A stretch of 64,000 nucleotides of DNA, taken from assembly GCA_028023455.1 (NCBI GenBank), contig JAQFVV010000002.1:18290001-18354000 (forward strand), in the 5' to 3' direction. Under the pieces are notes generated by a model. It worked only from the letters and a program-made list of their open reading frames with translations. It was not told the DNA's origin and did not search any database. Origin of the DNA: Epiperipatus broadwayi (lineage: Eukaryota; Animalia; Onychophora). Below are positions 10,615 through 56,016 of this stretch, piece after piece. Positions within the stretch are counted from its first letter, which is position 1. Every line of letters begins with the position of its first letter. Both the position numbers and the translations under genes were made by a program.

Positions 10615-11116
10615 TAGTTAAGATTTTACTTCATTAACGCTTAAAATAAATTAATATATATATATGTGCTCTGCACACAGATAATGAAGCTATTAATTGT
10701 CAGTGAATTATTAAAATTTACTGCCAAGCGCTTTCAGGACAGTTTACAGTCCCATATTCATGGCGACTTATTCTATTATTAACTGTAAAATTATGCAAAT
10801 TTTATGCAAATTTATTTGCAGATGTTACGTGGACCATTTACAAGATAGGGAATAGCAGGCCTCTCTTCTGTTGATTGTCGATGGGTCACCTGCAATTAAC
10901 AGAAGAGAGGCCTGCTATTCCCTATCTCGTAAATGGTCCACGTAACGTCTGCACATAAATTTGCATAAAATTTGCATAATTTTACAGTTAATAATAAAAT
11001 AAGTCACCATGAATATGGGACTGTAAACTGTCCCGAAAGCACTTGGTGGTAAATTTTAATAATTCACTGACAATTAATAGCTTCATTATCTGTGCGCAGA
11101 GCACATATATATATTA
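10615..11116. mobile_element. Palindromic Penelope-like 3'-end insertion (~220-bp arms)
   Basis: Arms of about 10649-10872 and 10898-11119. The right arm begins with INRREACYSLSRKWST* (10895-10945), similar to INRRDTCFVISKRWTI* of the GIY-YIG remnant at 30462. 13-bp TSD ATTAACTTTGACA at 10602-10614 and 11117-11129. Confidence 0.85.
11003..11050 (+). ncRNA. Minimal type I hammerhead ribozyme, A3-U8 core variant
   Basis: GTCACC-ATGAATA-T-GGGAC-TGTAAACT-GTCCC-GAAA-GCAC-TT-GGTGGT, giving 6-bp stem I, 5-bp stem II and a tetraloop stem III. The mirror copy at 10720-10767 (-) keeps the palindromic GCGC loop. Confidence 0.75.
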
Positions 11117-11427
11117 ATTAACTTTGACAATGGAATTGGATGTTTCTTCAATCACATATCTATTCTTCAATTGCACATACATCAAGTCTGACTCCAATTT
11201 GTTTTTGTCTTTTTTAAGAATCTAGTAATGATCAAATTCAATTAGATCTAATGACCAATGGTAATAAATGATAGTGATTTCTTTATTTTTTTTTTAATTT
11301 GAATTTCTGTGTTCATTTTTGAAATGTTTATTCAAAATTAATGAAAAACCTTACTTAAGTAAATTTTAATTAATGTTAAATAATGTAATTTTAGGAATTT
11401 AGTGAACTTTATCTCAGAAAATGCAAC

Positions 11428-11640
11428 AAAATATATATACAACCATATTAGAGATAAGCTTTATATTGCATAATTAGCGAAGTGTACCTAACATGCTTTC
11501 GACCACTTAACCATAATAGTTTTTCTTCTTACCATCAATACCATGATTATATTATTATTAAATGGTCGAAAGCATGCTCAGCATACTTTGTTTATTATAC
11601 AATATAAAGCTTATCTCTAATATGGTTGTACATATATTTT
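11428..11640. repeat. Inverted repeat (~75-bp arms) containing the 3' half of a hammerhead motif
   Basis: The arms carry TGGTCGAAAGCATG(C)T(C). No intact CUGANGA-type core is seen. Confidence 0.7.
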
Positions 11641-11732
11641 GTGTTATTGTTAAATAATAATGTTTGATTAAAGAATTGCTTCTAATTTTATTCCAGAATG
11701 TGGGAAATAGTAGTTCTAATATCAGTATACAT

Positions 11733-11850
11733 TATCATCATCATCAACCATTATCAATACACTGCAGGATGAAGGTCTCTCCAAGTTCAATCCATCTTCT
11801 CCGACCTTTAGCTTCTCTTCTCCACATCACCCCTTTCTTATTTCATCCAT
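11733..11850 (-). mobile_element. RTE LINE extreme 3' end
   Basis: Reverse complement of 4255-4384, including the CAT repeat tail. Confidence 0.85.
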
Positions 11851-12488
11851 GATTATTAAACAGCAAGTTTTTTTTTTAAAAGATACTTCTGTTTTTGTTT
11901 TGCTTTTTTGTAAAAACTTTAAAATAATTTATTATTTATCAATATTTTAATTTTTAATTTTAAAAAATATTTAGACTTTTTATGCTAGATCAATTTATGT
12001 CATTTTATATTTATTTCTTTATAAATGTTAAAAGACATACTGCATAAAAGGAACATCACGACATATAGCAATAAAATCAAAAGAAATTTCCAAAAAAAAT
12101 TTAAAAGAAAAAAGTAAAAGTTATAAATAAGATTTGAAAGTTGAAAGACATAGATTAAATATTAGCGCACGCACACACACATACATCCTTACAAATGCTA
12201 TCATAATTTTCAAAGTCAATGAAACTTTTATACAAATTAAAGATTGTTTCTTTTCTGATTCAGTGTATGTGTAAGGCAATAAAAATATGTTATTATATTC
12301 AAAATAAGGATACCGGTTGAGCAATGACAAATGCCATAGTGTTTTTAAAAAATATAGTTAATAAGGACACTTTATCTAAAAAAATATTTTGGGCTTTTTT
12401 CCAAAAAAAATAGATGGCTAAAACTATCAAAATATGGTTAGTAAAGTAAGAATTAAAAACTGTCTCTGCATTATTGAAAAATGTGTTT

Positions 12489-12587
12489 TCAATACATTGG
12501 TGGTCTAGCGGTTAGAATGGCTGTGTTCCAAGCAGCTGGCCTGGGTTCGCTTTCTAGTCAAGGCATTTGACATCGGAAAAAAAAAAG
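12489..12587 (+). mobile_element. tRNA-Gly(TCC)-derived SINE, short form
   Basis: CATTGGTGGTCTAGCGGTTAGAATGGCTGTGTTCCAAGCAGCTGGCCTGGGTTCGC..., followed by TTTGACAT and poly-A. Homologous to 33229. Confidence 0.75.
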
Positions 12588-12593
12588 TAATGA

Positions 12594-13349
12594 GATGTGA
12601 TTTTTACTTTTCTCATCAGAGGTAGATTTCTGTTTTGTAACATGCTCATTCATTTGTCATAAAAATGGAAATGTATCTACCACTTAAACAAAGAGACAAG
12701 TATTGAGCATTTTACAGTTGAGTCCAAAATTCATATGGCTTACTATCATTCTACCTTTTTTCTGAATGAAAATTCTTGATTGTCCACCATAGATGTGATT
12801 TTTACTTTTCTCACCAGAGGTAGATTCCTGTTTTGTAACATGCTCATTCATTTGTCATAAAAATGGAAATGTATCTACCACTTAAACAAAGAGACAAGTA
12901 TTGAGCATTTTACAGTTGAGTCCAAAATTCATATGGCTTACTATCATTCTACCTTTTTTCTGAATGAAAATTCTTGATTGTCCACCATAGATGTGATTTT
13001 TACTTTTCTCACCAGAGGTAGATTCCTGTTTTGTAACATGCTCATTCATTTGTCATAAAAATGGAAATGTATCTACCACTTAAACAAAGAGACAAGTATT
13101 GAGCATTTTACAGTTGAATCCAAAATTCATATGGCTTACTATCATTCTACTTTTTTTCTGAATGAAAATTCTTGATTGTCCACCATAGATGTGATTTTTA
13201 ACATGCTCATTCATTTGTCAGAAAAATGGAAATGTATTTACCACTTAAACAAGAGATAGGTATTGAGCATTTTATGGCTGAGTCCAAAATTCCTATGGCG
13301 TATTATCATTCTACTTTTTTTCTGAATGAAAATTCTTGATTCTCCACCA
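12594..13349. repeat. Tandem array of a 198-bp unit: three near-identical copies and one diverged, deleted copy
   Basis: GATGTGATTTTTA starts at 12594, 12792, 12990 and 13188. Confidence 0.95.
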
Positions 13350-14278
13350 CATCAAATTATGTGTGTGCGTGTAATGTTTTCTATCATTAAAAATACATTA
13401 ACACTTCTTAATCATCATAAATATCAGATTAAAAAAACTTTGCCCCTGTATGATAATAATTACTCAGCTTTATAATTTCACATTTTCCTTAACATTTGCC
13501 TAGATTCTATTTAGATTATAAAAGGCATTACATATCTAACACCTAATTAGTTTATTTTACCAATAGTACATTAGCAAGCCTGATTAACTATATTATCTTT
13601 CCCCCATCATAATGGAGCAGCATTAAAACATCAATCATTCTGGTATACTTTTTTCCACTTATAATATGATCCAATCTATAGCTTTCAATCTATAGTATTC
13701 AATCTATAGCTGATTATAAGACATGAAAAAAGTTTCAGAAAGAAAACCTTCATACGAATCTGTTTAATTATTGATAATTCAAGAATTAATGTCATTATCA
13801 TTATTATTGCAGTGATAAAATAATCACTAGAATCTAATCCTATCAGTATGAATAAATTCTATTTTCTGATGAAAACATAATACGTAATGAGAGTATTCAG
13901 ACATATCTTATCTTCAACTTTTCCAGAATATTTCTGATAAAATGGATGTCATTATTAATATTAAGATTAACATATTGCTATAATCCCATGTTATATTTGA
14001 TTGCAAAAGTATATATTAAACTTTCATAAAGATAAGTTTTTCAGAAGTTTTATGCAAAAATATTATATATTATTAAAAAAAAAAAAAATTCCCTAAAAAA
14101 AGTTTAAAAACATTTGTTAGTATGAAATTGAATTTAATGTACTTATTTTCAATGACATGGATGGCTGAAAAGCTGGAGAGTGGAGAAGATTGAAGCTTGT
14201 CTATTAAAGTGTGAAGATTTCCTATTTTAATATAAACTGAGCACTGATTATGTATACATGTGGAATATGGTGATTTGG

Positions 14279-14321
14279 ACCAACTAATAAATGCTGGTTC
14301 AGCACGAAATATGTATATTGG
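14279..14321 (+). ncRNA. Decayed hammerhead motif (same family as 25920-25963)
   Basis: ACCAA-CTAATAA-A-TGCTG-GTT-CAGCA-C-GAAA-TATGTA-TA-TTGG. The stems are kept but the core G5 and G8 are mutated. Confidence 0.65.
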
Positions 14322-14394
14322 AAATCATTTGTCTTTTTCCTGTATATGTAGTTAAATATTAATTCTTATTAAGTGTGATGTCAGCATGTAATAC

Positions 14395-14600
14395 TTATAT
14401 AACGCTAAAACCTCAGTACATGCACCTTGAGTGTTCCCAAATCAAAATGCTTTAGATTATATAATTAAGAAAATAGGTTGAGAGATAAGAGGGGTCCCTC
14501 TTATCTTTATAAAGTTGAATCTTGCGTTACGATTTGTAGAGGTCTCTCTTGCTAAAAGTAAGCACTCAAGGCACATGTACTGAGGTTTTAGCCTTATATT
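14395..14600. repeat. Fold-back element (~38-bp arms)
   Basis: GCTAAAACCTCAGTACATGCACCTTGAGTG pairs with CACTCAAGGCACATGTACTGAGGTTTTAGC. A related fragment lies at about 2745-2837. Confidence 0.75.
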
Positions 14601-14699
14601 ATATGTGGTTAAGGGTATAGATTGTATAAGATGGATTGAGTAGATTTAGAGAACTTGAAAGTCTGATTTCAAGTTCTTATATATATATATATATATGAG

Positions 14700-15445
14700 T
14701 TGCTATTATGGTTTGGATATGCAAATTATGAAAAGGCATTTGATTCTATAAATATTTATATTAAAACATTGGATCATCAAGATATTTACCTGGAATATTG
14801 TAATATTTTGAAGAATATTTATCAAAAGGCAAACAGTAGTCTTTAGATTACATGATGATATTATAAAGATTAACATTAAGAAGAGTTTATGACAGAGTTA
14901 TTTTATATACCAAAACTTTTTATAGCAGTTTTGCAAATTAAGCTTCCGGAATAAAAGTAAATAGAAATTATTAAATTAATTAGATTTTGCAAATGATATA
15001 ATTGTTTTGAAAACAATATTTCAGGGCTTTAGGAAATATTGCAAGTGTTTTCAGATAAAAGTAAGAGTAAGATCAAAGGCAAATGTTTAATGGATTTTGA
15101 TAATCATGAATTAAAAGAAATTAACAGACATTATTACCTTGGTCAGATTATTAATACAGATGATAACACAATAGATGAAATTAATCACAGAATTAAACAT
15201 GGATGGAATGCTTTTGATAAAAATAACTTCATTTAAAAGGTATACCTATGCTTTGAAAAGGTAGATTTTTAATAGATAAACTTTATTAATTCTTACTTAT
15301 GAGTTTGAGACTTAGTAAGAAAAAATTAAAAACAAAATACATGAGTGAGAGAACAAATAGGTATCACTGAGATCAGTGAAAAAATTAAGAAACTGAAAAG
15401 CAACTAGAATTGACATATGGCAAAAAGAGGTGATAATAGATAGGT
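14700..15445 (+). mobile_element. Degenerate RTE LINE fragment
   Basis: A YEKAFDSI-like RT motif near 14725, then ORF 15039 (YYLGQIINTD..DEINHRIK.GWNAF) homologous to 3646-3885. Confidence 0.8.
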
Positions 15446-15447
15446 AG

Positions 15448-15562
15448 TTTTTTTTTCCATATGTTATAGCATCAGCCAGGAGGCGAACCCACAACAACTG
15501 TCTGCAAGCAACTGCTTGCTTGCAAGACAGCTGCGCTGACATCTCAGCTAACAACGCTTGAC
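15448..15562 (-). mobile_element. tRNA-Gly-derived SINE, long form
   Basis: Reverse complement of the 1251 and 22959 family. Flanked by TAATAGATAG(G/A)TAGTT direct repeats. Confidence 0.8.
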
Positions 15563-16431
15563 TAATAGATAGATAGTTGAAGTCTTAAATTAAATTCTAG
15601 AGATTATAAAAGACTTAGAAAAAGACCACATTTGAAATAGATTGATAAAATAGAGAATTTCACTGGTGTGTAGAGAAGAGAAGCTATATATCATATAAAC
15701 CAGATTAAACTTGGAAGACCCTTCTTTTTTAAATTGTGAATCAATCCAGGAACTTTTAATCCTAAAAATCCTTCCTTATAATATAGAGCTAAAAAGCATA
15801 AAGCACACTTTAAAGTTTTATTAATAATCTAAGATAAATTTGCTATGATTTCTATAGAGGAATGAAGGATAAGCTTATAAAAGCAATGTTGCGTCATATA
15901 TGACTTGCTTTATTGATAATTAGAAGAATGAAGGAATTGCGCATTTTCAACTGGGAAAAGAATCATCTCATTTCCCATATCGTAATCCAAATGTAAGTTA
16001 ACTCAGTATAATCCGCTGCCAAATTATTTCACAGTTTTATATGTATTAATTTAAAAAAAAAAAATTATAAAACACTAAATATTGATCTGTATTCAATAAA
16101 AAGAACTTTAAAATATTTAAATTATTTAACTTATTCAAATAATTTGTCATAAACAATATTAATAATTACTTGTAAAACAATAGAATCAGTTCCAGCTGTA
16201 ATAATCTGAAGAATATGTTAAATACAATAATTATAATTGTTTTAAATTCACTATTAAATTTTTCAGCCTGTTGTACTAATTATTTTATCGTATTTCTTTC
16301 TGATAAAATTAACTTTTAAGGAAAGTTAATTTCATATATATAATAAGCAATTTATAATATATTTTTTCAAAAACTTGGATAAAATAATGAAATAAACACA
16401 CACATGTTTAAACATAAAAAACTAACATATC

Positions 16432-17130
16432 ATCATTATCATCCAAAAACAGTGCATTGTGGTTGTAATTACATCATTCTATCTTCATCAATTTATTTCA
16501 TATCTGCACATGAAAAACATTTCAATTTCACTGATCACATTTACATAAAAGAATATTATTGTTCTACTTCTTAATCTTCCTCCTAAATTTTGCATCAAAA
16601 TATTTTGTAAAAACCTATCATGTCTTAAAATATGATGAAAATTTTAATATTTTTCATTTTTATCATATTCAATTGTTCTCTTTTCACTCCAAGTTCTCTT
16701 AATATTTAATCATAAGTCTTCTTGTTCATCCTACTTATTATAGTTAATCTTTTTCAAAGCCACATTTCCATTCCTTCCATTTTTTTTCTTTTCTTATGGA
16801 CCATGTTTCACAACCATATATCAACATATTTCAAATACAGGTTTTAATAAATTTCATTCTATTTTTGGAATTGATATTTTTATTTCGCTGTAAAGCTTTT
16901 TCCTTTGGAAAAGCATGTTTTGCTAATATTATTATCCTTTTAATCTTCACAGTACAACCATTGCAATGATAAATATTTTCCAGATAAAATTCTTAAACTA
17001 GTTCTAAAAATATATTATTTATCTGCACATATAATCAGACTTTTCGTCTTCTGTCTAGTCTTATTAATAATCATTTTACTTTATTTTAAAAGACTCTGTC
17101 TCTGTAAGCACATGCAATATCTTAAGCAGT
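16432..17130 (-). mobile_element. Degenerate 3' part of a second RTE-like LINE family
   Basis: The minus strand gives AK.AFPKEK, GCETWSIRK and EMWL motifs, plus a GAT-rich tail near 16432. Confidence 0.65.
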
Positions 17131-17633
17131 AATAGATATGGAAAAAATAAAAATGAAAATATTTCTTTTATTATATGCTGTATTTAAAAACTATAATTTT
17201 AATATTTTCAAGAAAATCTAGTTAGATCACAATGCTATAGATTGTTTATAAAATTATATATCACTGCATTCACTCTTCAATTTGATAAATTTTATTCACT
17301 TTTTTTTTCTGTTGGGTTTTAATTCCTTTTCAATTCATATACTGAATGTGCATATTAAACTTGGCCAATTTCTGTGACAGTACATCTTATTGATTAATTA
17401 TATGCTCATTAATAATTTTATTAACTAAAATTACTTTTCAATATTTTAATAAAACCAGAGCAATTCTGTGTTTTAGTAGTTCTTTAGTAAACAACCAATA
17501 AGTAATTTTATATAATGATTTAAAAAATGAATGGGTGAAAAATTATTTTATTTTTCATCAAACTATAACTTTTGTCTTAACAAATTTAAAGATGAATGTG
17601 GTTATTTGCTAACAATAAAACAAAAGTGTAATT

Positions 17634-18025
17634 AAACCACTAAACATCACATGATCACTATCTCATACTAGCACAATAATTGTTATTAAACAATTCAAAA
17701 CAAAACATATGACTATATAAGCTATTGAGCTTGGATTGAAAATATTAATAGTGTTTTCAATTTCATTCTCATAGTTTTGTAGTTAAATAGAGTTAAAAGG
17801 TGGGTGCTGGAGGGTTGCATTAGATCCTAAGATCTAGGTGCAGTGCTCTCAGATCCAAGGCTCCTCACTGATGAAGGCCACAAGCCAGAAACTAGTCTGG
17901 GGATATTGGATGAGTAGGCACTAGATAGGGATTTTATGCACAAGCCTTCTGGCATCCATTGATTGCTCTTGTTAGCACAAGATGGCACTACTATATGGAG
18001 AGTGTTGTTTTGTTTTGAATTGTTT
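17634..18025 (+). mobile_element. Hammerhead-bearing retrozyme-like element (family F) with an inverted 3' segment
   Basis: 12-bp TSD AAAAGTGTAATT at 17622-17633 and 18026-18037. 17634-17707 is the antisense of the family 3' end. Confidence 0.8.
17853..17911 (+). ncRNA. Type I hammerhead ribozyme with extended stem I
   Basis: ATCCAA-GGC-TCCTCA-CTGATGA-A-GGC-CACAA-GCC-A-GAAA-C-TA-GTC|TGGGGA-TA-TTGGAT. Predicted cleavage is after C17897. Confidence 0.75.
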
Positions 18026-18234
18026 AAAAGTGTAATTGTAATAAATATAATTTTCATTACTGATGAGTGAATTGTTATACACCTAGATGAATTGAACCAT
18101 CATGTTTTAACTTTATCTTACAAATAGTTAAGCATCTTTCCTCAGCTTTAAAAAAAATAATTACTTAATATTATTTATAAATTTATTTAGCACATTAATT
18201 ACGTGAGTAATATTTACTAAGGCTATAACTTCAA

Positions 18235-18450
18235 GAATATGCACGTAAAATGTGATAGTAGGGACCTCTACAGGTCTTACAAGCTTATGTTTTGTAATAA
18301 ATATGCGTGTAAAATGCGATAGTAGGGACCTCTACAGGTTTTAACCACAAGCTCACGTTTTGGAAGAAAAGAGTTTTTTCTTCCAAAACATAAGCTTGTG
18401 GTTAAGACCTGTAGAGGTCCCTACTACCACATTTTATGCGCATATTCTTA
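18235..18450. repeat. Near-perfect palindrome (~75-bp arms) with a duplicated left arm
   Basis: ATGCG..TAGTAGGGACCTCTACAGG..TTTTGGAAGAA is mirrored at 18378-18446. An extra partial left arm lies at 18236-18293. Confidence 0.85.
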
Positions 18451-19059
18451 ATATTATTTAAAAAATTTTTTCCAAATTGATTTCTACTAAATCAAAAAAG
18501 TTCCCAAATAACTGATACTTGCATGCCACCACTATTAAAATTGTATAGAATATGAATGTATTGTTAAAAAGTAAATAATAGCAAATGATTAAATTTTTGT
18601 ATTAATAGTGCAATAACTGTTATAATCACAATAATAATGATCTAGCTGTGACTAATAAATATTGAAATAATAAATAATTTTATATGATTTTTACATTCTT
18701 TCATTGTGAAGCCTTGAAAATTGTGGCTCTTGTTTACATCAGATAAAATTGGGCTGGTTCATAATTGAAAAATGTTGCTTATCAGCCCTTTGAATAATTT
18801 AAAAATAATTTCCTTTGGTGATAATTTATACAATGCTGTCTAAATTTAAACTAATTATTATTATTATTTTAAAAAAGTATTATTAGCAAGAAATATCAAT
18901 GAAAAATTAATCCACAATAATATATAATTCAGGATTTTTGCAAATAGAAAAAGCTAATAATTAAACATATTTTTTTGTGAAATTAATTGTTTGAAATTAT
19001 AATTATAATTAATGTTTGTGAAAAATCGTTTTCAAACTATTTACACACTCAGGAAACAC

Positions 19060-19258
19060 GAAGTAACGAATAGGAATCTTCATATTATTATTTCCAATTT
19101 TTATTAATAAAGAACAAATAGGAATCGAAGTAACAAATAGAAATCTTCATATTATTATTTCCATTTTTTATTAATAAAGAACAAATAGGAATCGAAGTAA
19201 CAAATAGGAATCTTCATATTATTATTTCCAATTTTTATTAATAAAGAACAACTTCGTT
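19060..19258. repeat. Three tandem 67-bp units
   Basis: GAAGTAAC starts at 19060, 19127 and 19194. Flanked by the short inverted AAAC(AC)GAAGT / ACTTCGTTT. Confidence 0.9.
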
Positions 19259-21003: not shown

Positions 21004-21006
21004 AAA

Positions 21007-21394
21007 TCATCATCATCAACCATTATCAATCCACTGCAGGATAAAGATCTCTCCAAGTTTGATCCATCTTCTCTGATCTTTAGCTTATCTTCTCACATCA
21101 CCCCTGCATACTTTCTTATTTCATCCATCCATCTCATGTGGTCTCTTTCTGGATCTTTTACAATCTGTTGGAATACAGTTTAAGATTTCAATTGTCCATC
21201 TATTATCATTTCTTCTAGCAATATGTCCAGCCCAACTCCACTTCTGTCTTTTAAATTTTTCAATGAGGTCAGTAACACCTGTTTGTTCTTTTACCCATAT
21301 ATTGCATTTTCGATCTCTTCTTGTTACTCCCAACATGCATCTCTCCATACTATTTGAGTGGTCTGAAGTCTCTGTATTGCTCTTCTATTAAGTG
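21007..21394 (-). mobile_element. RTE LINE 3' end
   Basis: ORF 21121-21348 is near-identical to 4034-4369. CAT repeat tail at 21007. Confidence 0.9.
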
Positions 21395-22958
21395 TTTAAA
21401 TATATATGTTAAAATAAAGTTTTCATGACCATCAGATATAAAGGATATATTAACTGGGTTTATTCATGTATAATTAAAAAAAGTGTTATAACACTATTTC
21501 AGCTGAATCACCCTTGCCATTAACTAAGTTACATTACCCATTTTATGGCAGGTGCAATCCAATAAAAACAGGGGTGTAATAGTACAGTTAACCTTACACA
21601 GATTAACTTGGACAATTTATATTTTGTATAATATACTTAGATAGAATTATGTATGAATAGTGAAAAGCCTCATGATGCAAAAATGAGTTCAAATCCTGAT
21701 GGTCACATTCAATCCAAATAATCATACAATACTTGTCAGTAAGTGGGTATTTTAGCTACAAATTAATAAAGAATGAAAATTCATGTAAATCCTCTCTAGT
21801 CACTAACTGCCAAGTTTTGTGCTAATCGTCTACACTTTTACCATCTCTCTATGATGATCCGGTGAAGAAGCCTATGCTCTAAAGTATCTTTATAGAGGCT
21901 GTTTTTATATACGTATACATGATGATTAATAGTTTAATAGAATAGCTTTATGCTAATCAATAATTTCTTGGTTCAATCAAAAATGAAATATCCAGGTCAT
22001 AGTAATCATAATATATATTAAATACAATTCCAAAGCTAAACATATTTCATGTTAAAATTAATCAGGGAACAGAACAAAACTCAGACCATTATTACTATTA
22101 AAAATGAACTTCAATGAATAAGTTTCACTGAGAAAGAGAAAGATCATAAATGTGGACAAAATTTCTTTAATGATTATTATAAATATGCGATTTTTTCCGC
22201 ATGTGTTAGTGAAGCTGTAATTATAAGGTTTAAGTTAATATGCCAGCTTAGCACTTTCAAGATTTGGTATTCAAATCTCATACTCATTGCTTTACTGAAT
22301 GAATACTGATGTAATTTATTGTACACATATGCAAATGAGCTTGAATTTTTAATTAGTTAATCCATTGTTTGGAGAGACCAAAGCATAGCTCTCTTCTATT
22401 AATGGCACTGAGATCATTTGCTATGTAAAAAGCTTCTTTGACATTTCTTTTGGCATCACTCTTCTCTGTGCAAATGATTTGGGCAGAACTGGGTTCAAAT
22501 ACATGGCCTGTAGCTGCTTGGTGGCCCCAAAAAATTGATGTTCCTTCATTTTTATTTTTAACCCTGTTACTATCTACAATTATGGTCTATTGATTTTAAG
22601 TAGTTCTAATTTTAAAAAAGTTAATGTGTAGATATTTTTCTATAAATTTCTCCTTTTGTCATTTTATACTACTAAATAATTGTGGATAAAAGTCTTTAAT
22701 TTTTGTTGTTGTTGTTGATACAGAAATATGAGAGATTTTTTTCCAAAGTTAGCTTCAATGTATAATCATGATGTTACAATTCTAAGTGCTAAAAATAGTT
22801 ATCATGAAATTAAAAATATCAAATTCAAATCTTTCAGTAATATAATTTAGTTTGACAGAGGAAATAGATTAAATATTTTTTATCTCCATTGATTGTAATC
22901 TTAGTTACTGTATTTTTATAAATTGTATGGTTTTCATTTAATTTTATTTTTGTGAGCT

Positions 22959-28302: not shown

Positions 28303-28345
28303 ACCCCTGACCATGATTTCGTGCTTTGGCACTCCTCAGAGAGAT
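28303..28345 (-). ncRNA. Apparently intact canonical minimal type I hammerhead ribozyme
   Basis: Minus strand ATCTCT-CTGAGGA-GTGC-CAAA-GCAC-GAAA-T-CATG-GTC|AGGGGT: complete core, perfect stem II, 6-bp stem I (with G-U pairs) and a GUC site. Confidence 0.85.
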
Positions 28346-30339: not shown

Positions 30340-30725
30340 ATACACAGAAATTATTACAAGCTAAGCGCTTTCGAGGCCTTTTGCCTCATATTCATAGTGG
30401 TAGTGTGAGCTGCAGAACGAAGAAAGGAAACAAAACAGTATGCAAAGCGTATGCAAATGAACTAGATAGTCCAACGTTTGGAGATGACAAAGCAGGTATC
30501 TCGTCTATTGATGGAGTTATTATTGCCATTAATAAAATATGCTTCTCTGATTTTCCGCTTGATGTCATTTTTCTCAATACAGACTATTTTAGGGCTGGAG
30601 GGTTCAAACAAATGTCCTGTCTTCTTGGAATGCTCTAAAAATGTTGATGAATTATCATTGTTTTTCATAGTTCTATTATATGTATATCTGTGTTGTGATA
30701 TAATATTTATTAGTTTATTGTAAAT
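30340..30725 (-). mobile_element. Penelope-like element 3' end: GIY-YIG C-terminus, 3' UTR and hammerhead
   Basis: ORF 30462-30668 SSTFLEHSKKTGHLF..KIVCIEKNDIKRKIREAYFI..INRRD..W fits the GIY-YIG C-terminal pattern of PLEs. The HHR starts about 60 nt after the stop. Confidence 0.85.
30355..30403 (-). ncRNA. Minimal hammerhead, A3-U8 core variant
   Basis: Minus strand CCACT-ATGAATA-T-GAGGC-AAAAG-GCCTC-GAAA-GCGC-TT|AG. Stem II is perfect; stem I is only 2 bp in this copy. Confidence 0.7.
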
Positions 30726-31446
30726 ATTAATTTTTGAAATTCTTTTCTATAGCAATTGTAATGAATTTTTTAAAAATTCTCGGAATTTTGTAGAAAGTTT
30801 GAAATGGAAATTGCAACTTAAACTAATAAAATGTAGTGATAATTTAAATGGCAAAAATAAAAGTATAAAAATGGTGACTGGACAGAAAATAAACAATAGT
30901 TAATGCTCTTAAATCTCTAGAAAATCAGCTATTTACTAATGTGTGAATTTTTCTTGATACAAATATTTAAAAAGCAGAATAGAGACCAACACTGGTAGTT
31001 AAAGAACTGTCAAGATTTAAGATAATATAGCTGCTTTTAGTGAAACATCTTTCAAAGAAAGGAATTTTAATGGAATAGTTATATGGTTACAAGTTTACTT
31101 GAAAGATCAGATTAATATGAGAAAAAAGAATGCATAGTATTGGATTTGATGTAAAGTCTGATTTAGTATTTTTTATTCTTGAGAATAAATAACTCATTAT
31201 ATCTTTTATTCTTGAGAATAACTCATTATATCACTGAAAGGTTAATGGTGCAAAAACTTGGCTTGCATAATATTTTAAGGGCATATTTGATTAGACCATA
31301 TGTTCCAACATTACACTTGAGAGCTTATTAAAAGGTCAAACTATTTTTCTTGGTGACTTTAATGTATATGTTGATGAAAATAATAGACTTTGGGCAAAAG
31401 TTGTTGGAAATAATAGTAATAAAGCTAAATATTCAAACAAAACTTA

Positions 31447-31662
31447 TTAAACAGGCAAAACTCTCCATACAGTAGTGCCACTCAGTGCAAGCCAGAGTAA
31501 TCAATGGATTCCAGAAGGCTTGTGCATAAAATCCATATCTGCCTTCTGGCATCCATTGATTACTTTGGCTTGCACTGAGTGGCACTACTGTATTGAGAGT
31601 TTTGCCTGTTTTATCAGACTGAGCAAGCATAAGAAATGGTGATCATGTGATTTAGTGGTTTA
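31447..31662. mobile_element. Palindromic family F 3'-half insertion
   Basis: AAACAGGCAAAACTCTCC..GAAGGC is mirrored by GCCTTCTGG..GCCTGTTT, then the family 3' end. Confidence 0.85.
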
Positions 31663-31972: not shown

Positions 31973-32297
31973 TGCTTATAACTCCCCTCATATACATTTT
32001 AATGTAAAAAATTTTTTTAATATAATTCCTTTATTTTTCTGACAGTTTCAGCTGTCCTGCAGTCTTCATCAGAGCTACAGTATTGAATAATATAAACATA
32101 TAGAAAGGTTATATATTTATATCATTCAATATTGTAGTTCTGATGAAGACTGCTGTACAATCGAAACTGTCAGGAAAATAAAGGAATTATATTTAAAAAA
32201 AATTTTGCATTAAAGTGGATATGAGGAAAGTTATTGTAACCAATATATTTGAACATATGAAGAAATGGAAAAAAAGTAAAGGAGAATAATAAGAACA
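31973..32297. mobile_element. Palindromic H1 element with two hammerhead motifs
   Basis: Cores at 32039-32072(-) and 32140-32174(+). 10-bp TSD TAACATTAAT at 31963-31972 and 32298-32307. Confidence 0.8.
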
Positions 32298-41665: not shown

Positions 41666-41749
41666 ACAATAGTATTAAAGATGGATTTGTTTATTTTTTT
41701 ATTAATGCATAAAGGGTAAGTTGATAGTAACTTTAAATTGCTAAGAGTC

Positions 41750-46644: not shown

Positions 46645-47418
46645 TTAAAGTAGTGAGATTACCTTACGCCTCCTCGCTCGTCCTTCAGTTTGAATGGTTC
46701 GCGTACACATGTCAACATATTCGGCAAAGCTTCTTCCTTCCTGATTCTCGCTGTAGTCCAAATTGTTCAACCTTGCCAATGCTAAAATATAACTACAAGC
46801 AATCCTTAATATAGCTAATTTGGAAAGTTTTTGATCATATGAATAAGAAGGTACGGCCCGCCGTAAACTTTCAAATGCAGCACTAATAGTATGTACACGA
46901 GTCCGTTCTCGAGCGTTAGCTTCTATCCTCCTTTCCCGTGTCATATTTTTATAATTTCTCTGTTTTGGTTTAGATAAACATGAATTTGTATGTGATATTG
47001 TAGTTTCCACTCGCAAACCGGAAGCACTGCAGCTATCAGAGGTATTTTCCCTATTTACTAACGTAGTAGAATTATTACGTTTGTTGTGAAAACGAGGACT
47101 GGAAAGGTCATTCAAATTAGCAGTATTTTCTACATCCTCGTCAATGTCATCAATTTCATTACTCATAAGATCTAAGTCCGGACTGGGGCTATGAAACATG
47201 CTTCCCGACTCACTTCCACTTTCCCAATCCCACCGGTACCGTTTTTCTTCGACTACTTCCTTTAATTTCCGGGGTTCTGATGATTTTCGTTTATTTCTCC
47301 GTTGCAAATGATCTCTAACAGGTTTGACTGAAACTTCAACACTATCCTCACTTAAATCAGTTCCTGAATTCGGCGAAAGTTCACCCTCAGATTCGCAAGT
47401 GGATGTACGCGCCGCCAT
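46645..47418 (-). CDS. net (ATOH8): Net / Atonal homolog 8 bHLH transcription factor (main coding exon, or whole CDS)
   Basis: bHLH RRIEANARERTRVHTISAAFESLRRAVPSY..QKLSKLAILRIACSYILAL followed by the family-typical DYS..CTRTIQTEGR. N-terminal KRKSSEPRK. Probable splice donor AAG|GTAATC after 46663. Confidence 0.95.
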   Translation of the reverse strand: MAARTSTCESEGELSPNSGTDLSEDSVEVSVKPVRDHLQRRNKRKSSEPRKLKEVVEEKRYRWDWESGSESGSMFHSPSPDLDLMSNEIDDIDEDVENTANLNDLSSPRFHNKRNNSTTLVNRENTSDSCSASGLRVETTISHTNSCLSKPKQRNYKNMTRERRIEANARERTRVHTISAAFESLRRAVPSYSYDQKLSKLAILRIACSYILALARLNNLDYSENQEGRSFAEYVDMCTRTIQTEGRARRRKVISLL

Positions 47419-47960
47419 ATCTCCGTCTGCACTCTAGTAGCGCACGGATCAATTCTTGGCGTACAAACACTCTCCGTCGCAGCTTAGCCACAGCTGTTGA
47501 ATGCTCAAGAATCCACGAGACGCTTTGCGTTTACTCGCTAATCTAATGCAGATGCTTATCTTCCAATTGATATGAAGATTTGCCACTTTAATTCAGTGCT
47601 GTATCATCAGCTATAAACCCTGCGATTAAAAGGAATCTCATCTAACAGTATTTTTCATTCGTTATTCTTTTAATTTCAGACTATTTATTTTATACCATAT
47701 GTAAGCTCAGAGGCCAAAAAGCCCGGCTTTTTTCGCTATCAGTTGCTTGCTGTGCCAGGTGACTTACAATCTAAAGCAAACTTAATGTGTGATCTTAGGG
47801 GCAATAGTTTGTTAAGTGGGCTCGACGAGTTGATTTTTAAATAAAGGGGGAGTTTGGTTTTATGAATATGGCGCATAGTGGCACAGCTGTGAGCGGAGCA
47901 TTGTTTACTATAGCAGTTATTAACATTACTAACCGACACCTGGTCTGGATCAACGCACAC
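47419..47960 (-). promoter_or_regulatory. GC/CpG-enriched 5' UTR and proximal regulatory region of net
   Basis: Local GC and CpG enrichment. E-boxes CAGCTG (~47490, ~47884) and CAGGTG (~47757). The TSS cannot be determined from sequence alone. Confidence 0.4.
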
Positions 47961-50593
47961 TGCAGTCAATTGTAATAGGTTGATAAAGAAAATAGGAAAT
48001 TAGAGATTTTAATTTTTTTTTCTTCTTTCAAAAATGTTAAATATTAAATACAATTTTTAAAAAATCATTACATTTCAAAACGTAATGCGGTGTGTTTTTT
48101 TTTTTTGCAATTTGAAATTATGAGGGGAAAATCATGTTTTCTCCCATCCTTCCCTTCTCTCTGTACACAATATTTGCGTGCCCTTGCGGTAATCTCGAAT
48201 TCCTTTCATAAGAAAAAATGCATGTAAATATGAAAAATAGTTGATAAAATCTCATAAAAAAATTAAGTCAGTAATATAAATCAAAAAATAACATTTAAAA
48301 TATCAGGACGATAAATGAAAGGAAGAAATAAGTTTAATTTTGTATATTGCTCTAATTAGAATCGTAACAATTAAAACAATAACAAGTTGTTGTTTTTTTT
48401 AAAAAAAATCATATTTGTTGAAAATTTTGACAATTTAAATTTCGGGAGGGACCGTTATTTGAAATGTTTTAAAACAGCCATCTTTAAATGCAAATAATAA
48501 TCAGAATAATAAAATAGCCGCTGCCAAAAACGTACTATTAATACTTGACTTGATTAACATAGAAATCAGCACCTGTGACTGCGAACAAAAACCGTTTAGT
48601 ATTTGACGGCCGCATGGTACGCTGTCTGCCTCGTCTTTTTATTTACTAAAAAAAAAAGAGAGATGAGAATAGTCGATTATAAGATAGAAGGGAATAGCAT
48701 CTCACGTACACTCTAATTAAAACCATTTGCATGAAAGGCTTATATATATAGGCCTATAGTAAAATCAAACAATATTTGCATGAACGTTAAAGCGGAGTTT
48801 CTCCAGATGGATTTCTTCTCTCACCTGTTTCCTTTAACATCTATTGAAAATGTTCTTTTCAATTTTCTTACATTTAGATAGTATTTATAAATGAAGATTA
48901 AGAAGGAGATCTTATAACTGTTCATTCTAATAATAATATTTTAAAATTAAAATCAATAATTTAATAATTTATTTTTTAGAATTAAATATTTTGAATTGCA
49001 TATAAAATTTCAATGCTCTTTCAGCGTTCACTTTGTCTATTGTTATTGTTTTTTTTTTTTTGGGGGGGGGGGATATCCTGAATGTTTTATTATATTTCTT
49101 AGATATATAATTAAAATCTTTAATTTTTTAAATATTTCAAATCACATGCATCTCAATCATAAATATGACTCTTATTCTTAGCATATTATCATAACGCAGA
49201 GATGACCAAGTATTACTGCTGGTTACCTAGTCACTTCAATTACCCTTTAAGCAGATAACTTAATATACATTATGTATTAATATATTTCTTGTGTGCATAA
49301 GATACATAATTAAGTTTTCCCAAATCACACATTTTCCTAATGCCTTGTTCAAAAGTTACATACCACTCCACAATGGTAACATTTATTCTATCTACTTAAA
49401 CCTCTCTTCAGAAAAAAAATTAACACACATATCTAGTTCAGCAAATTATCTCCAATTATGATAATTTTGCAGCTTGATAAAAATAAAAATACCTTTCAGG
49501 TATTCAACAGAAAATTATTTAGATTTCAGGATGTCATATAAAATAAATAATAGTATACGATGCCAGTCTATTAAATAACAATCCTATACAATATAGAAAT
49601 TTTTTTAATATGAATACTATTTTAGTTGTTTAAATAACTATTAAAAACAATACAGGATTGCCATAATATGTTAAAGTAGCAACATGGAAAGGTTAGGGGA
49701 TACTATGTGCACATAATTTTATTATTTTGAATTAATTTGTAATATGCTGCTCACACCAATCTTGCAATGGGGGAGGAGGATCTGTGTTAAAGCACATCAA
49801 ACCTGAATCACTAATAATGTTCCTTAATCAATTACTATGCGTATACAGTAAGATATTGTTATAGTATGATTAAAGGAAGGCATATAATTATTTTTTTTCC
49901 AATTTAGTGTTTGAAGTTATATGCTAAACTTGAGTTCCCAATTGAATCTGCAGTGGTGAATAATGGATTTTCAGATAAGAGTGTTTAACATAAATAACCT
50001 ATAAGCATTGGATTGGTAACATCAAAATATATGCTGCTTTAAAGAATAATATATTGACTCAGAAAAAGAGAGATATGTATTTCCAATACAAGCATTCTTT
50101 TTTTTAAATTGTATTTATACTTTCTCTTTCATTCACTGCATTATTTTTTATTTTACTTTTGCCTTATTGTATTCAGTTGATTGAGAATAAATTCTCGTGT
50201 CATTGGACATTTCTTTGTACTATCTGTCACAATGAGATTGTATGTTTGTGTATTCATAAACTATATGAATGGTGTGTAGTTTAAAAAGTAAAATAGATAC
50301 AAATTTAACTTATTATTGATTGTTATACTTCATACAAAATCAAAACTAAGAATGAAAATTCTTAATTGTTATTTTGTATGGAATTCATAGTTGTAAATTT
50401 TGTATGCAGCAGTAGAGTTAAATAAATTAGTTTCAAATAAGAGTTTAACTTAGGAAATGATTGTATTCATGAAAGTCTTCTACTAAATTTGAGGATAAAT
50501 GACTATAGCAATAGAAAGTGATTTATTTTTAGAACAATCTATAAATTATAAATTTTAAAACACTAGAGGAATAATCTAATAACTTTTGATTTC

Positions 50594-50974
50594 AAACCTC
50601 ACATGATCACGATATCTTATGTTTACAGGCTGTTAATAACAATAGCAAACTCTCCATACAATAGTGCCACCAAGTACACACCTTCATAATCAATGGATGT
50701 AGGAAGGTTTTGAGCATAAAATCACTACATATTGCCTATTCATCCAACATCTCCAGACTAGTTTCTAGCTTGTAGATGGTTGAATTAGATCCTAAGCTCT
50801 AGGTGCAGTGCTCTCAAATCCAAGGATCCTTACTGACAAAAACCACAAGCTAAAAATTAGTATGGGGATAGGCACTAGATAGGGATTTTATTCAGAAACC
50901 TTCCTCCATCCATTGATTATGATGTCTTACAGTTAGTGGCACTACTATATGAAGAATTTGCTGTTGTTGTTAAG
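50594..50974. mobile_element. Old palindromic family F insertion
   Basis: 10-bp TSD TTTTGATTTC at 50584-50593 and 50975-50984. Decayed HHR near 50818-50870. Confidence 0.75.
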
Positions 50975-52650
50975 TTTTGATTTCCTGAATAATTTCAAAT
51001 ATTGACATCATTAATCTTTTTTTAAAAATCTTTTTGTCCCATGTTTTTAGAAAACAATATTTCTTGATTTTAGATATTGATGCATTATAAATAAATATTA
51101 TTAATTAATTATGTATTAAACACATGAATAAAAACTCAATAACATTGAAATGACATCTGCCAGTAATTCTGATATTTGTTACTGGTAGATGCCAATTTAA
51201 TTTCAGGCTCTTTATTATTTGAGAAATAATTTTCTCAAAAACTATTTCAGCTTTTGATGACATTATTAGGAGAGTTTATACATATAGCATGGATGTTGCT
51301 ATTCTGTGGCAAATATTTTATGCATAATTTATCTGCCAAGATTATTTTTTTATCATTTAATATGTAGTCCATTTGTCTTAAGAATATGGATAAGTTTTAT
51401 GCAATGCTGTAAATTGATTGAATTTCTTTCTGTCACTTAATAGAAGATACTTTAGTAAAATTAGACAAGCTCATCATGAAGATTGTTAGTGTATATAAAA
51501 GAGTCATATATCAAGAATGGTCAGGTAAAAGAGTTGATATAAAAGATCAGTGGATGGTAGCAGTAGATATCAGCAAAATGTTTTAAAATAGCAACAAATG
51601 GCAAACATTAGTTAATGTCAAATGCAATCTAAGAATAATAAGATACAAACCAGATAGAAAATAGATGAATGAAGTAGGTATGAGCAATAAATTGAATAAT
51701 CTATTCTAAATATAGCTTTTGGCTATTGTTTTGCTTTGCTTACAGTTAGACTCATTAAATATATTCAGGATTATAAAATAATAGAAATTAAAACAAATCC
51801 TGATTCTAATAATATGTTACAAATGAGAGGGAAAAAATTATTTTATCATCTGTCGACAATCAAGAAATTATTTTAAAATAAATTCATTAGCAGACAATTA
51901 ATTATTTGCAACAATTGTTTTCATTGAAACTTTGGTTACATTCAATGATATAGCTAGAAATGCTAGGATTGCATAAAACCAGGAGAGAATTTTTTTTTTT
52001 TTCCAAATTCATAAGGAAGACTTTTTTGGTTGAATTAGAGAGCCTTTTCTGGCTAAAAAGCTAAGTAAGATTTTTGTAAATATTTTCTATGCACTGAACA
52101 TACACCTGGAAATAAGAAATATAGCTATGGAAAGGAACATGATGTATCATTTTTCTAGGCTAATAATTCTATACCTAGTAATATCTATTTATAAGCATCA
52201 ACATCTAATAATAAATCTTTTGAAAAAAAGACTGATTTTTGAAAATATAAAGCAAGAAGATAAAAAAAGTAATAATATCATTAAAAATTAAATTCCCATT
52301 TTGAAATTTTATTATGCAGATAGAAACCCTTTACAAAAACTGGATTTTTTCTTTAGCACTCTTAAAAATGTAAAATCTGGAGAAGATTCTGCTTTAAAAA
52401 AAAATTAATTACTACAAAGAATAAAAGCTTACTACAATAATAAAATCCATCTCACAAATGGTCACTTTTGTTTACCATCAATGTTCATACAAGCCTCTCA
52501 GATAATTCTAATGAATTTGTAGTAAACATGAAAAAAATAAGACTAACAATCATGAAGCTAATAAAGCAGATTGAATGCATAAATCACTCAGACTAATAAA
52601 AAAATCAACCTAAATCAGTAAGTAATAAATTTAATCCTAATCATTATATA

Positions 52651-53204
52651 CGATCTGTGATAATTTAATTCTCAGAATGGTCATGTGATATCAGCGTTGG
52701 ATTAATTGTATTAAAATTACATGAGTATTAAACATTCATGTTTAAACATGCTTAAGCTGACATGTGTGTAGAATATCAGCTGAAAGAGCTAGTTGTTAGC
52801 TGTTGAGAAGATAATAAATATTCATGCATACCTTTTGGTGTAAAAATGAATCATAGTGTACTCTTGTGAGAGAGTTTTTTGCAAAAAATCAATTATACAA
52901 CTAGACCACCCTGTGGGTTCATTTGATTTAGCTTCCTGTAATTTTTGGTTATTTCCAAAATTAAAAATTGCATTGAAAGGACAAAGATTTTGTACTATAA
53001 CTGATATCCAAAAGAATGTGAGACAGCCGCCCAACAGTATTCCTGCAAGTGTGTTTCAGGTGTGTTTCAAAAAATGGGAATGCCATTTTAATCAGGTATG
53101 GAAGAACAAGGGTACTACTTTGAAAGCAATAGTAGCCATTAATGTACATGTCCACATGCATATTTTATGAAGGTGCATTCCAGTAATTAAACTATCACAC
53201 TTTA
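52651..53204 (+). mobile_element. Internally deleted mariner element
   Basis: ORF 52856-53170 has LDHPVGSFDLASCNFWLFPKLK..LKGQRF (a degenerate HPPYSPDLAP motif). Imperfect ~28-bp TIRs with TA flanks. Confidence 0.85.
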
Positions 53205-53652
53205 TAAGTTAAACTAATTTCAAATTAAAATGTCTTGTTTGTAAAGAAATTGTTTATTTATGCAAAATTAAATAAAGTATAACCCATTAATTTTGTCAAT
53301 ATTCTTAACATTTTGTTCACTTCTAAAAATGAGTATTTATTTGTAAAATCAGTAACTTTTTGTGTGCATTGGAGAAGGTCAGCATTGCACATTTATTAAT
53401 TTTATTCCTTTAGTATTATCTAAACAACTTATTTGAACTTAAATATATGATGGTCAAACAGAAGCATGATTTATACACAGAATAGTGACAAAATCTATAT
53501 TAAAAGAATATAGTCCTATTATGTTTAGGAAGATCATAGGCATATATGTGATTTAATTTACCAATGCCCTCTGACACTGAAAAACATTGCATTTGTATTC
53601 AAAATTAATTATTTCAAAATCACATAATATTAATATCATCTGTATTCCTTAT

Positions 53653-54140
53653 TACTTTTTACAATGGTTTTTTACAACTCACTACTGACAGTTTTAATTG
53701 CCCCAGCAATCTTCTTCAGAACTTCTACTATATCTTCTTCTTTACTTTTTTTGCATTCCTTTACATATATATGACTTATAATCAATCTCCACTTTAATGC
53801 AATTTTTTTTTATATAATTCCTTTAATTTCCTAAAAGTTTTGACTGTCCTGCAGTCTTCATCAGAGCACTTGCATAACCTTCCTCACAATTCAATGCAAT
53901 TTTTTTTATATAATTACTGTTATGTGAGTGCTCTGATGAAGGCTGCAGGACAGTCGAAAGTGTTAGGAAATTAAAGGAGTTATATAAAAAAATTTGCATT
54001 AAAGCATATATGTGGAGATTGATTATAAGTAATATGTATATGAATAACTTCTACTATATAAGTAGAAGTTTTGAAGGAGATTGTTGAAGCAATCGAAACT
54101 GTCAATAGTGGGTTGTAAAAAAGCATTATAAAAATAGTAA
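53653..54140. mobile_element. Nested palindrome with two different hammerheads per arm
   Basis: H2-type cores at 53685-53719(-) and 54071-54104(+). H1-type cores at 53830-53864(-) and 53933-53967(+). Confidence 0.85.
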
Positions 54141-55349
54141 ATGGATTTGGCAATGAAATAAGAAAGATAAAGTTATAATACTTCATGAAGAAGATATTTC
54201 AAAATCACATAGAGTAAAAAAGATGATCAAAAGTAATAGTTTCCATCTAATATTAGCACAAAGAAAAATAGTTGATAAACCATATATTAATACTAGAGCA
54301 AATTCTAAGTACATTGTATTTGAAAAGTAGACATTTTGTTTGTTTTGTTGCTGTAGATAGTTATATGTCTGTTAGCTGCCATTCTGAAAAAGCTCGATGT
54401 GAACATGATAGTTGGAATAAAAGAAAAGAAAAATTGGTAATACCAGGGGAGGGGGGATTTCATTTCAGAGAAAATTGTTAGAGTATATTTATTGATGAAA
54501 ACAATAAAAGTGAAAGTGACCCCCTCCCCCCCAGTTAATGAGATAATTCTAGCTTCATTTAACTTGACATTCTTAAATATTCAATTATCAAACAAAACTA
54601 ATCTAGTTTTCCGTTGGAACAATGGTTTTTCATTGAAGAAGAAAACTATTTTACTCACCAGAAGTCAGGTTTGAAAATCAAAATCTCTTTAATAATTCTA
54701 TTAAAAAAAATACACAATGATAAGAACGCAGATATTTTAATAAAAAAAAGAATCTCTGCAAAAGCTGTTTTCCAAAATAAATGCATACATTAATACAATA
54801 CTGATGAAATTTTTAGTAAAATGACTTTATTTAAAAATTATAACTCTGGAACTTTAGCAGTCACTAAGATTTTTGCAATTTTACTTCATATCTATATTTA
54901 AAAAAATAATTACTTGATTGTTCCCATACTATAAATATTATAGACCAGTAAATAAGGAATAAATTGTGTCCAAAACGTCCAATAAGATAAGACAAAAGAT
55001 GACTAGTGGGTTTTTGGATAAGAACTAATTTTTAACATCAACAAGTTTGACTATAAAAGAATTAAAGTTATCTAAAAAATGTCATCTAATATGTGATTAG
55101 TAGAGTCATGCTCACAAAAATACTTTCTAAACCTCAATTTAAATACAACTATTTTATTTTATCAACAAAAGTCATGTAGATTGTTAATTCAAAAACTAAA
55201 TAAATATATTTAAAAATTTTAAAAAAACCCAATAAAATGACAATTGATATGGAGATTAAATATTTGTGTATATATATAAATTTAATATATTAAAAATAAT
55301 AATTCAATAAAAATTATTTATTTAATCAGACAACTTTTATAATAATATA

Positions 55350-56016
55350 TTTAATTTCACCAACCCGGATTTCGCCCTATACTGGAGCCTTATCAAGATG
55401 TAAATACACTTAGTTACTATACAATTCTTTCTTTTCTACAGCATCTCCACCTACAGGCTTCATTTTATATTACAATATCAAAGATAAAACAAATCTTCTA
55501 TTTCCTATTCATCACATACATAAACAATTATACATAATATTTACATATAATATTTATACATAATATTTGTCTAAATCATAATCATATATTTACATTATAC
55601 AATCACACATTTATACCTTAATATCATTCATAAATTTCCCAATCTTTCTTTCCTTATATACATATATAACCATATTTAATATTTTAAACCCAACATAATT
55701 ACAATGATAATCATCCATATAAATATATACACATAATTTACTTATAATTATACCAAACTTAAATTAAATTTTCCAGCTATCTAACAACACCCATTTTCCA
55801 GCCAACTTTACAGGACCTTTAACCATATTCATACATTTTTCAAAATTCTCCTGTATATACAAAGTTTCATAACATACCCTCCCACTATACTTCTTTATAT
55901 ATTTAATCACTCGAATGTTTTTTTCACAACTCATTCTATGCCAGTATTCAAAAAATGTACATAAATCCCTGATCTCATATCCTTCCTCCTAATTGCCCTA
56001 TCATGTTCTTTACCTC
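55350..56016 (-). mobile_element. Second Penelope-like 3' end (GIY-YIG C-terminus, AT-rich UTR and hammerhead)
   Basis: Frameshifted KEHDRAIRRKDMRSGIYVHFLNTG..RVCYETLYIQ..CMN..G...W, with the stop at 55764-55766. Confidence 0.75.
55358..55400 (-). ncRNA. Minimal type I hammerhead, U3-A8 core variant
   Basis: CATC-TTGATAA-G-GCTC-CAGTATA-GGGC-GAAA-T-CCGG-G-TT|GGTG: 4-bp stem I, 4-bp stem II and a palindromic CCGG loop. Confidence 0.75.

Follow-up and report, generated by a model that had tools for sequence, protein, structure and literature searches.

Probable hammerhead ribozyme motifs of Penelope-like elements with A3-U8 or U3-A8 in place of the C3-G8 core pair in a genomic stretch of Epiperipatus broadwayi

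How far can the core of a hammerhead ribozyme change in nature while its fold is kept? Nucleotides 3 and 8 form the sole Watson–Crick pair inside this core, and a natural swap of C-G to U-A was known before. The question is raised anew by a stretch of 64,000 nucleotides (nt) of the onychophoran Epiperipatus broadwayi (assembly GCA_028023455.1, contig JAQFVV010000002.1, positions 18,290,001 to 18,354,000 of the forward strand; hereafter the window, with positions counted from its first letter), in which hammerhead-like motifs lie behind remnants of Penelope-like elements (PLEs). At four sites of the window, A3-U8 or U3-A8 replaces the usual C3-G8 core pair of PLE hammerhead motifs, and we regard it as quite probable that these motifs are 3'-end fragments of PLEs carrying a minimal type I hammerhead with such an exchanged pair. 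The motifs were read directly and then parsed by a script in which positions 3 and 8 were left free; explicit parsing was chosen over a covariance model, and MAFFT misaligned stems II of differing length. A first-pass annotation of the window had placed three hammerheads, with the core AUGAAUA at sites 1 and 2 and UUGAUAA at site 3, and direct reading confirms all three, with the limits of sites 2 and 3 shifted by 2 nt. Its three sites were not the full set, a fourth motif of the A3-U8 type having been missed at 22243-22293, and its mention of canonical C3-G8 copies nearby is borne out by a motif at 28303-28345. These motifs read as follows, an arrow marking the predicted cut.

11003-11050, + strand: site 1, direct copy, A3-U8 minimal hammerhead, GUCACC AUGAAUA U GGGAC-UGUAAACU-GUCCC GAAA GCAC UU↓GGUGGU; A3 at 11009, U8 at 11014, extra U at 11016, stem II at 11017-11021 and 11030-11034, GAAA at 11035-11038, loop at 11039-11042, U16.1 and U17 at 11043-11044, predicted cleavage 3' of 11044
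10720-10767, - strand: site 1, inverted copy, A3-U8 hammerhead mirroring the direct one, loop 3 GCGC, predicted cleavage 3' of 10726
30357-30401, - strand: site 2, A3-U8 hammerhead, ACCACU AUGAAUA U GAGGC-AAAAG-GCCUC GAAA GCGC UU↓AGCUUG, predicted cleavage 3' of 30363
55356-55402, - strand: site 3, U3-A8 hammerhead, UACAUC UUGAUAA G GCUC-CAGUAUA-GGGC GAAA UCCGGG UU↓GGUGAA, predicted cleavage 3' of 55362
22243-22293, - strand: site 4, A3-U8 hammerhead, AUGAGUA U GAGAUUUG-AAUAC-CAAAUCUU GAAA GUGC UA↓AGCUGG, stem II of 8 bp, predicted cleavage 3' of 22249
28303-28345, - strand: canonical C3-G8 type I hammerhead, CUGAGGA, stem II GUGC/GCAC, loop 3 UCAUGG, UC↓, predicted cleavage 3' of 28309

The variants display the three-helix layout of a hammerhead, with an open helix I, a loop-capped helix II, and a short helix III. 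Helix I comprises 6 bp in the direct copy of site 1 (G-U pairs included), 4 bp at site 3, 3 bp at site 4, and 2 bp at site 2, helix II ranges from 4 to 8 bp, and helix III is made of the A15.1-U16.1 pair and a palindromic loop (GCGC, GCAC, GUGC, or (U)CCGG(G)). An extra base, U at sites 1, 2, and 4 and G at site 3, stands between A9 and 10.1; the 10.1-11.1 pair is G-C, or G-U at a decayed CpG; and the U16.1-H17 rule of cleavage sites is followed throughout, by UU at sites 1, 2, and 3, UA at site 4, and UC in the canonical copy. From the literal core consensus (C3 U4 G5 A6 N7 G8 A9...G12 A13 A14), the variants deviate at positions 3 and 8 only. The claim that the core bases and GAAA are kept stands, when that of a well-paired stem II falls short at site 3, whose helix II is the shortest with 4 bp, and the extra base after A9 had gone unmentioned.

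This anatomy is that of known PLE ribozymes. Every PLE that Cervera and de la Pena (2014, PMC4209133) examined has minimal hammerheads in its terminal repeats, with one base separating 9 from 10.1, G10.1-C11.1 conserved as a pair, and a palindromic 15.2-16.2 or loop 3. The window motifs share with them a location behind a reverse transcriptase (RT)–endonuclease open reading frame (ORF) in the terminal repeat region, an open helix I, a long helix II, the extra base, G10.1-C11.1, and a helix III cut down to the A15.1-U16.1 pair and a palindromic loop, all of these features being present here. The latter reduction implies action as a dimer, and the cleavage of PLE minimal hammerheads in vitro was reported to be weak and dimer-dependent (PMC4209133). 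When two copies of a window motif are cofolded, the dimer is indeed favored, as exemplified by the inverted copy of site 1 (-40.7 vs. -28.6 kcal/mol). Judged by their sequence, the motifs are allied in function and descent with the PLE minimal hammerheads, departing from the literal core consensus and abiding by the pairing rule.

The link to PLEs is further supported by the genomic context, the variant hammerheads beginning, at all four sites, 57-67 nt past the stop of a PLE-like endonuclease ORF tail. At site 1, only the last 16 codons are left, reading INRREACYSLSRKWST before the stop in both arms; the other tails, and an octamer found in the spacer between stop and hammerhead, are the following.

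30462..30653, - strand: site 2, endonuclease ORF tail, 63 codons plus stop, ending in ...SINRRDTCFVISKRWTI
22353..22586, - strand: site 4, third A3-U8 family, endonuclease ORF tail ending in ...AINRRELCFGLSKQWIN and a stop, hammerhead 59 nt after
55470..55508, - strand: site 3, possible ORF-end remnant, GNRRFVLSLIL and a stop, weakly resembling INRR..C[FY]..S, 67 nt to the hammerhead
10959-10977 (+), 10793-10811 (-), 22329-22336 (-), and 30451-30458 (-): octamer ATTTGCAT

The annotated presence of a GIY-YIG C-terminus upstream of the motifs holds insofar as the tails are related (with 63 codons at site 2), and has to be reduced to 16 codons at site 1 and to a short, weak remnant at site 3. The tails of sites 2 and 4 share 48% identity over 63 residues and 67% identity over 177 nt of coding sequence, and BLAST aligns that of site 1 to neither. 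Pfam left the short ORF tails of the window unscored, and a word-indexed protein search with the 94-aa tail of site 2 returned no matches. A profile of the site 2 and site 4 tails was searched against 1.84 billion representative proteins, and its matches include P0006, with a Pfam GIY-YIG domain at 324-396 (31.1 bits vs. a cut-off of 22.6), and P0019, a protein of 868 aa that carries RVT_1; the tail of site 4 matches the extreme C-terminus of P0006 (residues 355-424) with 37% identity over 71 aa. The window holds no RT sequence for a PLE assignment, the 5'-truncated copies keeping only the last 16-63 codons. As for the octamer ATTTGCAT, it lies in the ~60-nt spacer of all three A3-U8 families, twice in site 1, and is matched 19 times in the whole window, where 11.6 matches are expected; it is possibly a conserved element of the terminal repeat, acting as a promoter or in protein binding. 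A similar TTGCAT repeat occurs at the same place (about 1040-1075) in L005, one of the relatives from other assemblies considered below.

From a covariation perspective, we scanned the contigs encoding eight related proteins in other assemblies without requiring pairing at 3-8, and six of the eight harbor a minimal hammerhead 83-350 nt past the stop of the PLE ORF. The core is CUGAUGA (C3-G8) in L002, L005, and L006, and UUGAGAA, UUGAUAA, and UUGAAAA (U3-A8) in L001, L003, and L007, and all six have the extra base after A9. Taken together with the motifs of the window, they make a comparison of 12 motifs, in every one of which positions 3 and 8 are complementary (A-U 4, U-A 4, C-G 4), in agreement with the prediction of hammerhead-type PLE motifs with a covarying 3-8 pair. 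U4, G5, A6, A9, G12, A13, A14, A15.1, and U16.1 are invariant, A, G, and U occur at N7 and U, A, and C at position 17, the 10.1-11.1 pair is G-C or, where its CpG has decayed, G-U, loop 3 is palindromic, and the extra base after A9 is found in 11 of the 12. As far as such a comparison can tell, the varying positions are exactly those where hammerheads tolerate change. Across the three A3-U8 families, which are 67% alike or unalignable in the ORF tail and share their core, three of the five stem II pairs (2, 4, and 5) have changed on both sides (G-C/A-U, A-U/G-C, and C-G/U-A). Since the passage from C-G to A-U needs two transversions, these observations point to A3-U8 as an inherited state kept through long divergence rather than as a product of decay, and the alignments support the earlier proposal that this core has outlasted the turnover of its stems. 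The independent variation of positions 3 and 8 across genomic copies, which the first-pass annotation had held to be decisive against it, says little where copies decay neutrally.

Site 1 also preserves the footprint of the insertion that brought its two hammerheads.

10605..10614: left target-site duplication, AACTTTGACA, the same 10-mer standing at 11120-11129
10615..10642, - strand: one-sided "tail" of ~28 nt that extends the inverted arm outward, up to the duplication
10643..10877, - strand: inverted arm, 5'-truncated PLE 3' end with ORF tail at 10825-10875 (INRREACYSLSCKWST and a stop), spacer, hammerhead, and 3' tail
10893..11119, + strand: direct arm, 5'-truncated PLE 3' end with ORF tail at 10895-10945 (stop included), two octamers ATTTGCAT at 10959-10977, hammerhead, and 3' tail
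11120..11129: right target-site duplication, AACTTTGACA, by direct reading

The arms stand head-to-head, 15 nt apart, as an inverted repeat of 222 nt that is 95% complementary. PLE insertions are known to associate an inverted 5'-truncated copy with a one-sided tail of 30-40 bp (Craig et al. 2021, PMC8557442; PMC11167929), and site 1, in which the inverted truncated partner, the one-sided tail (here ~28 nt), and the target duplication (here 10 bp) are all present, is a complete insertion and a textbook example of this footprint, with no notable difference. The inserted copies run ~75 nt beyond the predicted cleavage site, and the RNAs that were reverse-transcribed must therefore have been uncut there.

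None of these variants would have surfaced in a consensus-based search. At the gathering threshold, Rfam has no match anywhere in the window, and at E<=10 all A3-U8 and U3-A8 variants remain unmatched, the canonical copy at 28303-28345 being the only hammerhead found (RF00163 Hammerhead_1, 28.6 bits, E=0.0066). Even this copy falls short of the gathering score of 34, owing to a minimal stem III and to the lack of loop–loop contacts. Compared with RF00163, the variants have the same topology and cleavage-site rule and yet fail at E<=10, as had been foreseen for searches relying on a consensus. Upstream of the canonical copy, no recognizable endonuclease tail was found. A second minimal family with a canonical C3-G8 core (CUGAUGA A GACUG..CAGUC GAAA CUGUC) has about nine copies in the window, several of which are arranged as head-to-head foldbacks:

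32072 (-) and 32140 (+), 58571 (-) and 58602 (+), 25241 (-), 35805 (-), 41601 (+), 53933 (+), and 62479 (+): copies of the second C3-G8 family

Many sub-threshold Rfam rows for plant or animal "microRNAs" are the hairpins of foldback insertions, this family included. Another foldback, at 11426-11642, has 93-nt arms that are 86% complementary, each of them containing, of a hammerhead, the 3' half only (..GGUC GAAA GCAUGC UC↓), with the truncation point inside helix II. The string AUGAUUA at 11543 (+) was rejected as a full motif, as it sits on the axis between the arms 11426-11518 and 11550-11642 and is probably fortuitous.

The abundance of the site 1 family was approached by mapping contigs from four public runs, which carry two organism labels, to 10893-11420 with a likeness of >=82%. 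The summed depth over the element, which is a summed word depth of assembled contigs without read ends and not a copy number, reaches 0.15-1.27 million against ~33 in the single-copy flank (DNA run). The family is present at a very high copy number, perhaps of the order of 10^4, at which its presence in the "RNA?" runs is indistinguishable from DNA carry-over. Loose contig ends place its 3' boundary at 11112-11119. The last ~45 nt of the element (11073-11119) show a higher summed depth, of 0.9-1.27 million, and contigs join this segment to differing upstream sequences, which implies a 3' tail common to several families. The dips in depth at 11037-11072 were rejected as a trace of cleavage, since they are equal in the DNA run and thus reflect mapping effects. 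Within the motif, no alternative letter attains 5% in any of the four runs at 11007-11033, a segment that includes A3 to A9, the extra U, loop II, and stem II for the most part. Variation is frequent only at four CpGs (11006, 11034/35, 11040/41, and 11047/48) and at the outermost base of helix I (11003), and it is rare at 11042 and 11045. Most members of the family have G at 11041, so that the loop 3 of the family is the palindrome GCGC. Once CpGs are set aside, there is no clear deficit of variation in the hammerhead relative to its flanks. As the copies in the window are dead, 5'-truncated, and decaying at CpGs, selection can be argued for source elements only, by comparison between families.

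On this basis, a mechanism can be proposed for the source elements. In their RNA, the motif would fold only when the palindromic loop 3 (GCGC) of one copy pairs with that of another, so that helix III is extended, and the dimer would then cleave 3' of U17, at UU↓G, or at UA↓A. The A-U pair would do the structural job of C3-G8, namely to hold nucleotide 8 in place. Cleavage would probably be slow and conditional, because the inserted copies extend ~75 nt past the site and their templates were uncut, which also fits with uncut RNA being the main substrate of insertion (PMC11167929). With regard to the A3-U8 variants, catalysis is plausible. In a PLE hammerhead of Anolis, cleavage is lost on a single change, C3G or G8C, and partly recovered when both are made (PMC11167929), and ribozymes with covarying nucleotides 3 and 8 are active in vitro according to work cited in PMC3088659.

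Several points nevertheless weigh against the idea that the variants are hammerheads kept for their function. Helix I is poor at sites 2 (2 bp) and 4 (3 bp behind a terminal mismatch), and the hammerhead models of Rfam give the variants no score. The copies of the site 1 family decay at C11.1 and G12 too, as expected of dead insertions. Loop II varies as little as the core does, so that the homogeneity of the family reflects a recent burst rather than selection, and within-family conservation was rejected as a sign of the latter. No ends pile up at the predicted cleavage site, an observation that is uninformative either way in contigs without read ends. A 2007 study by Przybilski and Hammann is said to have used A3-U8 and G3-C8 versions as laboratory constructs and to have found that any Watson–Crick 3-8 pair kept cleavage, with pyrimidine-3/purine-8 reportedly preferred in one ribozyme context; if so, A3-U8 may be a slow variant. 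Finally, cleavage is not needed for insertion in vitro (PMC11167929), which leaves any selected role unclear.

The likelier of two alternatives is that of a hammerhead descendant that is under selection and no longer cleaves, serving as a structured 3' RNA of the PLE, for instance one recognized by the PLE's own protein at reverse transcription. We hold it to be unlikely, although it draws on the poor cleavage of PLE minimal hammerheads in vitro (PMC4209133), on insertion in vitro being unaffected by catalytic mutations and on the lack of RNA-sequencing ends at the cut site of the Anolis PLE (PMC11167929), as well as, here, on the ~75 nt that copies include beyond the cleavage site, indicating an uncut template, and on variants that Rfam does not recognize. 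Against it, a structural role would leave the 3-8 complementarity of 12/12 motifs unexplained, and the bases fixed are those of catalysis (U4, G5, A6, A9, G12, A13, A14, and H17), when N7, stems, and loops vary.

Chance was assessed with a descriptor in which positions 3 and 8 were free, against 200 dinucleotide-preserving shuffles of the window. The descriptor returned four motifs with a Watson–Crick 3-8 pair, the shuffles 0.17 on average and 2 at most. Since the arms of site 1 stem from one event, the strict descriptor yields three independent matches; sites 2 and 4 enter the set only once helix I is relaxed. That the variants are meaningless, either C3-G8 hammerheads wrecked by mutation or look-alikes arising by chance where DNA is AT-rich, is very improbable and is already contradicted for A3-U8: the copies are old and decaying at CpGs, site 3 is a single degenerate copy whose U3-A8 could derive from two transitions (C3 to U and G8 to A), and a window of 27% G+C does contain AU-rich look-alikes such as the U3-U8 match at 32083, with stems of A and U only, but A3-U8 demands two transversions, is the state of a very-high-copy family with <5% variants at both positions, recurs in three families between which BLAST alignments are marginal or absent, exceeds the shuffles by 4 to 0.17, and belongs to sites that all lie at the same distance behind an ORF stop.

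If the preferred reading of the motifs as PLE hammerheads with an exchanged core pair is retained, how novel is A3-U8? The natural U3-A8 variants mentioned in the first-pass annotation are indeed published (PMC3088659; PMC4209133): natural U3-A8 covariation was reported by Perreault et al. (2011, PMC3088659), and U3-A8 is covariant in the Cercyon elements of Schistosoma mansoni, with ~1,300 matches (PMC4209133). The principle of an exchangeable pair is the same as in these natural cases and in the engineered 3-8 swaps of Martick and Scott (2006), the latter as far as they are described where cited in PMC11167929. The natural cases of Perreault et al. are U3-A8, whereas A3-U8 is found here as well, and this orientation, with a purine at 3 and a pyrimidine at 8, is unmentioned in PMC4209133, when it characterizes no fewer than three diverged families of the window, among them one of very high copy number. 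In a full-text search, outside which Lunse et al. 2017 and Przybilski and Hammann 2007 fall, no paper contained both "hammerhead" and "A3-U8." A3-U8 thus appears to be an unreported natural variant, U3-A8 in PLEs being already known since 2014. Outside this genome, the metagenome contigs of JGI, a collection with few animals, gave no evidence of the exact A3-U8 subtype with the narrow pattern ATGARTATG...CGAAAGCGCTW: of 95 matches, seven have a stem II of >=4 bp, about the chance number, and these seven lack helix I and lie on contigs of 45-53% G+C.

Should A-U truly be kept across diverged high-copy families, it would amount to a natural double-mutant rescue, in the opposite orientation. One may go further and speculate, doubtful as this still is, that A3-U8 is a naturally selected, catalytically competent core that defines a deep and very successful sub-lineage of PLEs, that clades "lacking canonical hammerheads" may carry covariant cores, and that the 3-8 pair might tune cleavage so as to spare uncut RNA. 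In practice, searches based on CUGANGA or on Rfam models under-count hammerheads, and some PLE lineages may be wrongly scored as devoid of ribozymes; the variant changes nothing in what is understood about the workings of hammerheads or Penelope elements.

The window is AT-rich animal DNA (24-32% G+C) with many transposon remnants. Its longest ORF, at 46648-47433 (-), encodes 262 aa that, with a high feature score, resemble atonal homolog 8 among basic helix-loop-helix factors, and is probably an exon of a host gene. A coding remnant with the peptide ..SNQWMPEG.. occurs in three copies of one repeat family, at 17830-18099 (-), 31436-31642 (-), and 61638-61898 (+). C-terminal remnants of the RT of a non-long terminal repeat retrotransposon (long interspersed nuclear element), with ..MERCMLGVTRRDRKCN.WV.EQTGVTDLIEK.., lie at 4001-4366 (+) and 21124-21384 (-). 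A tRNA-like match at 12494-12565 (+), with 27 bits just under the gathering score of 29, is possibly a remnant of a short interspersed nuclear element or of a tRNA.

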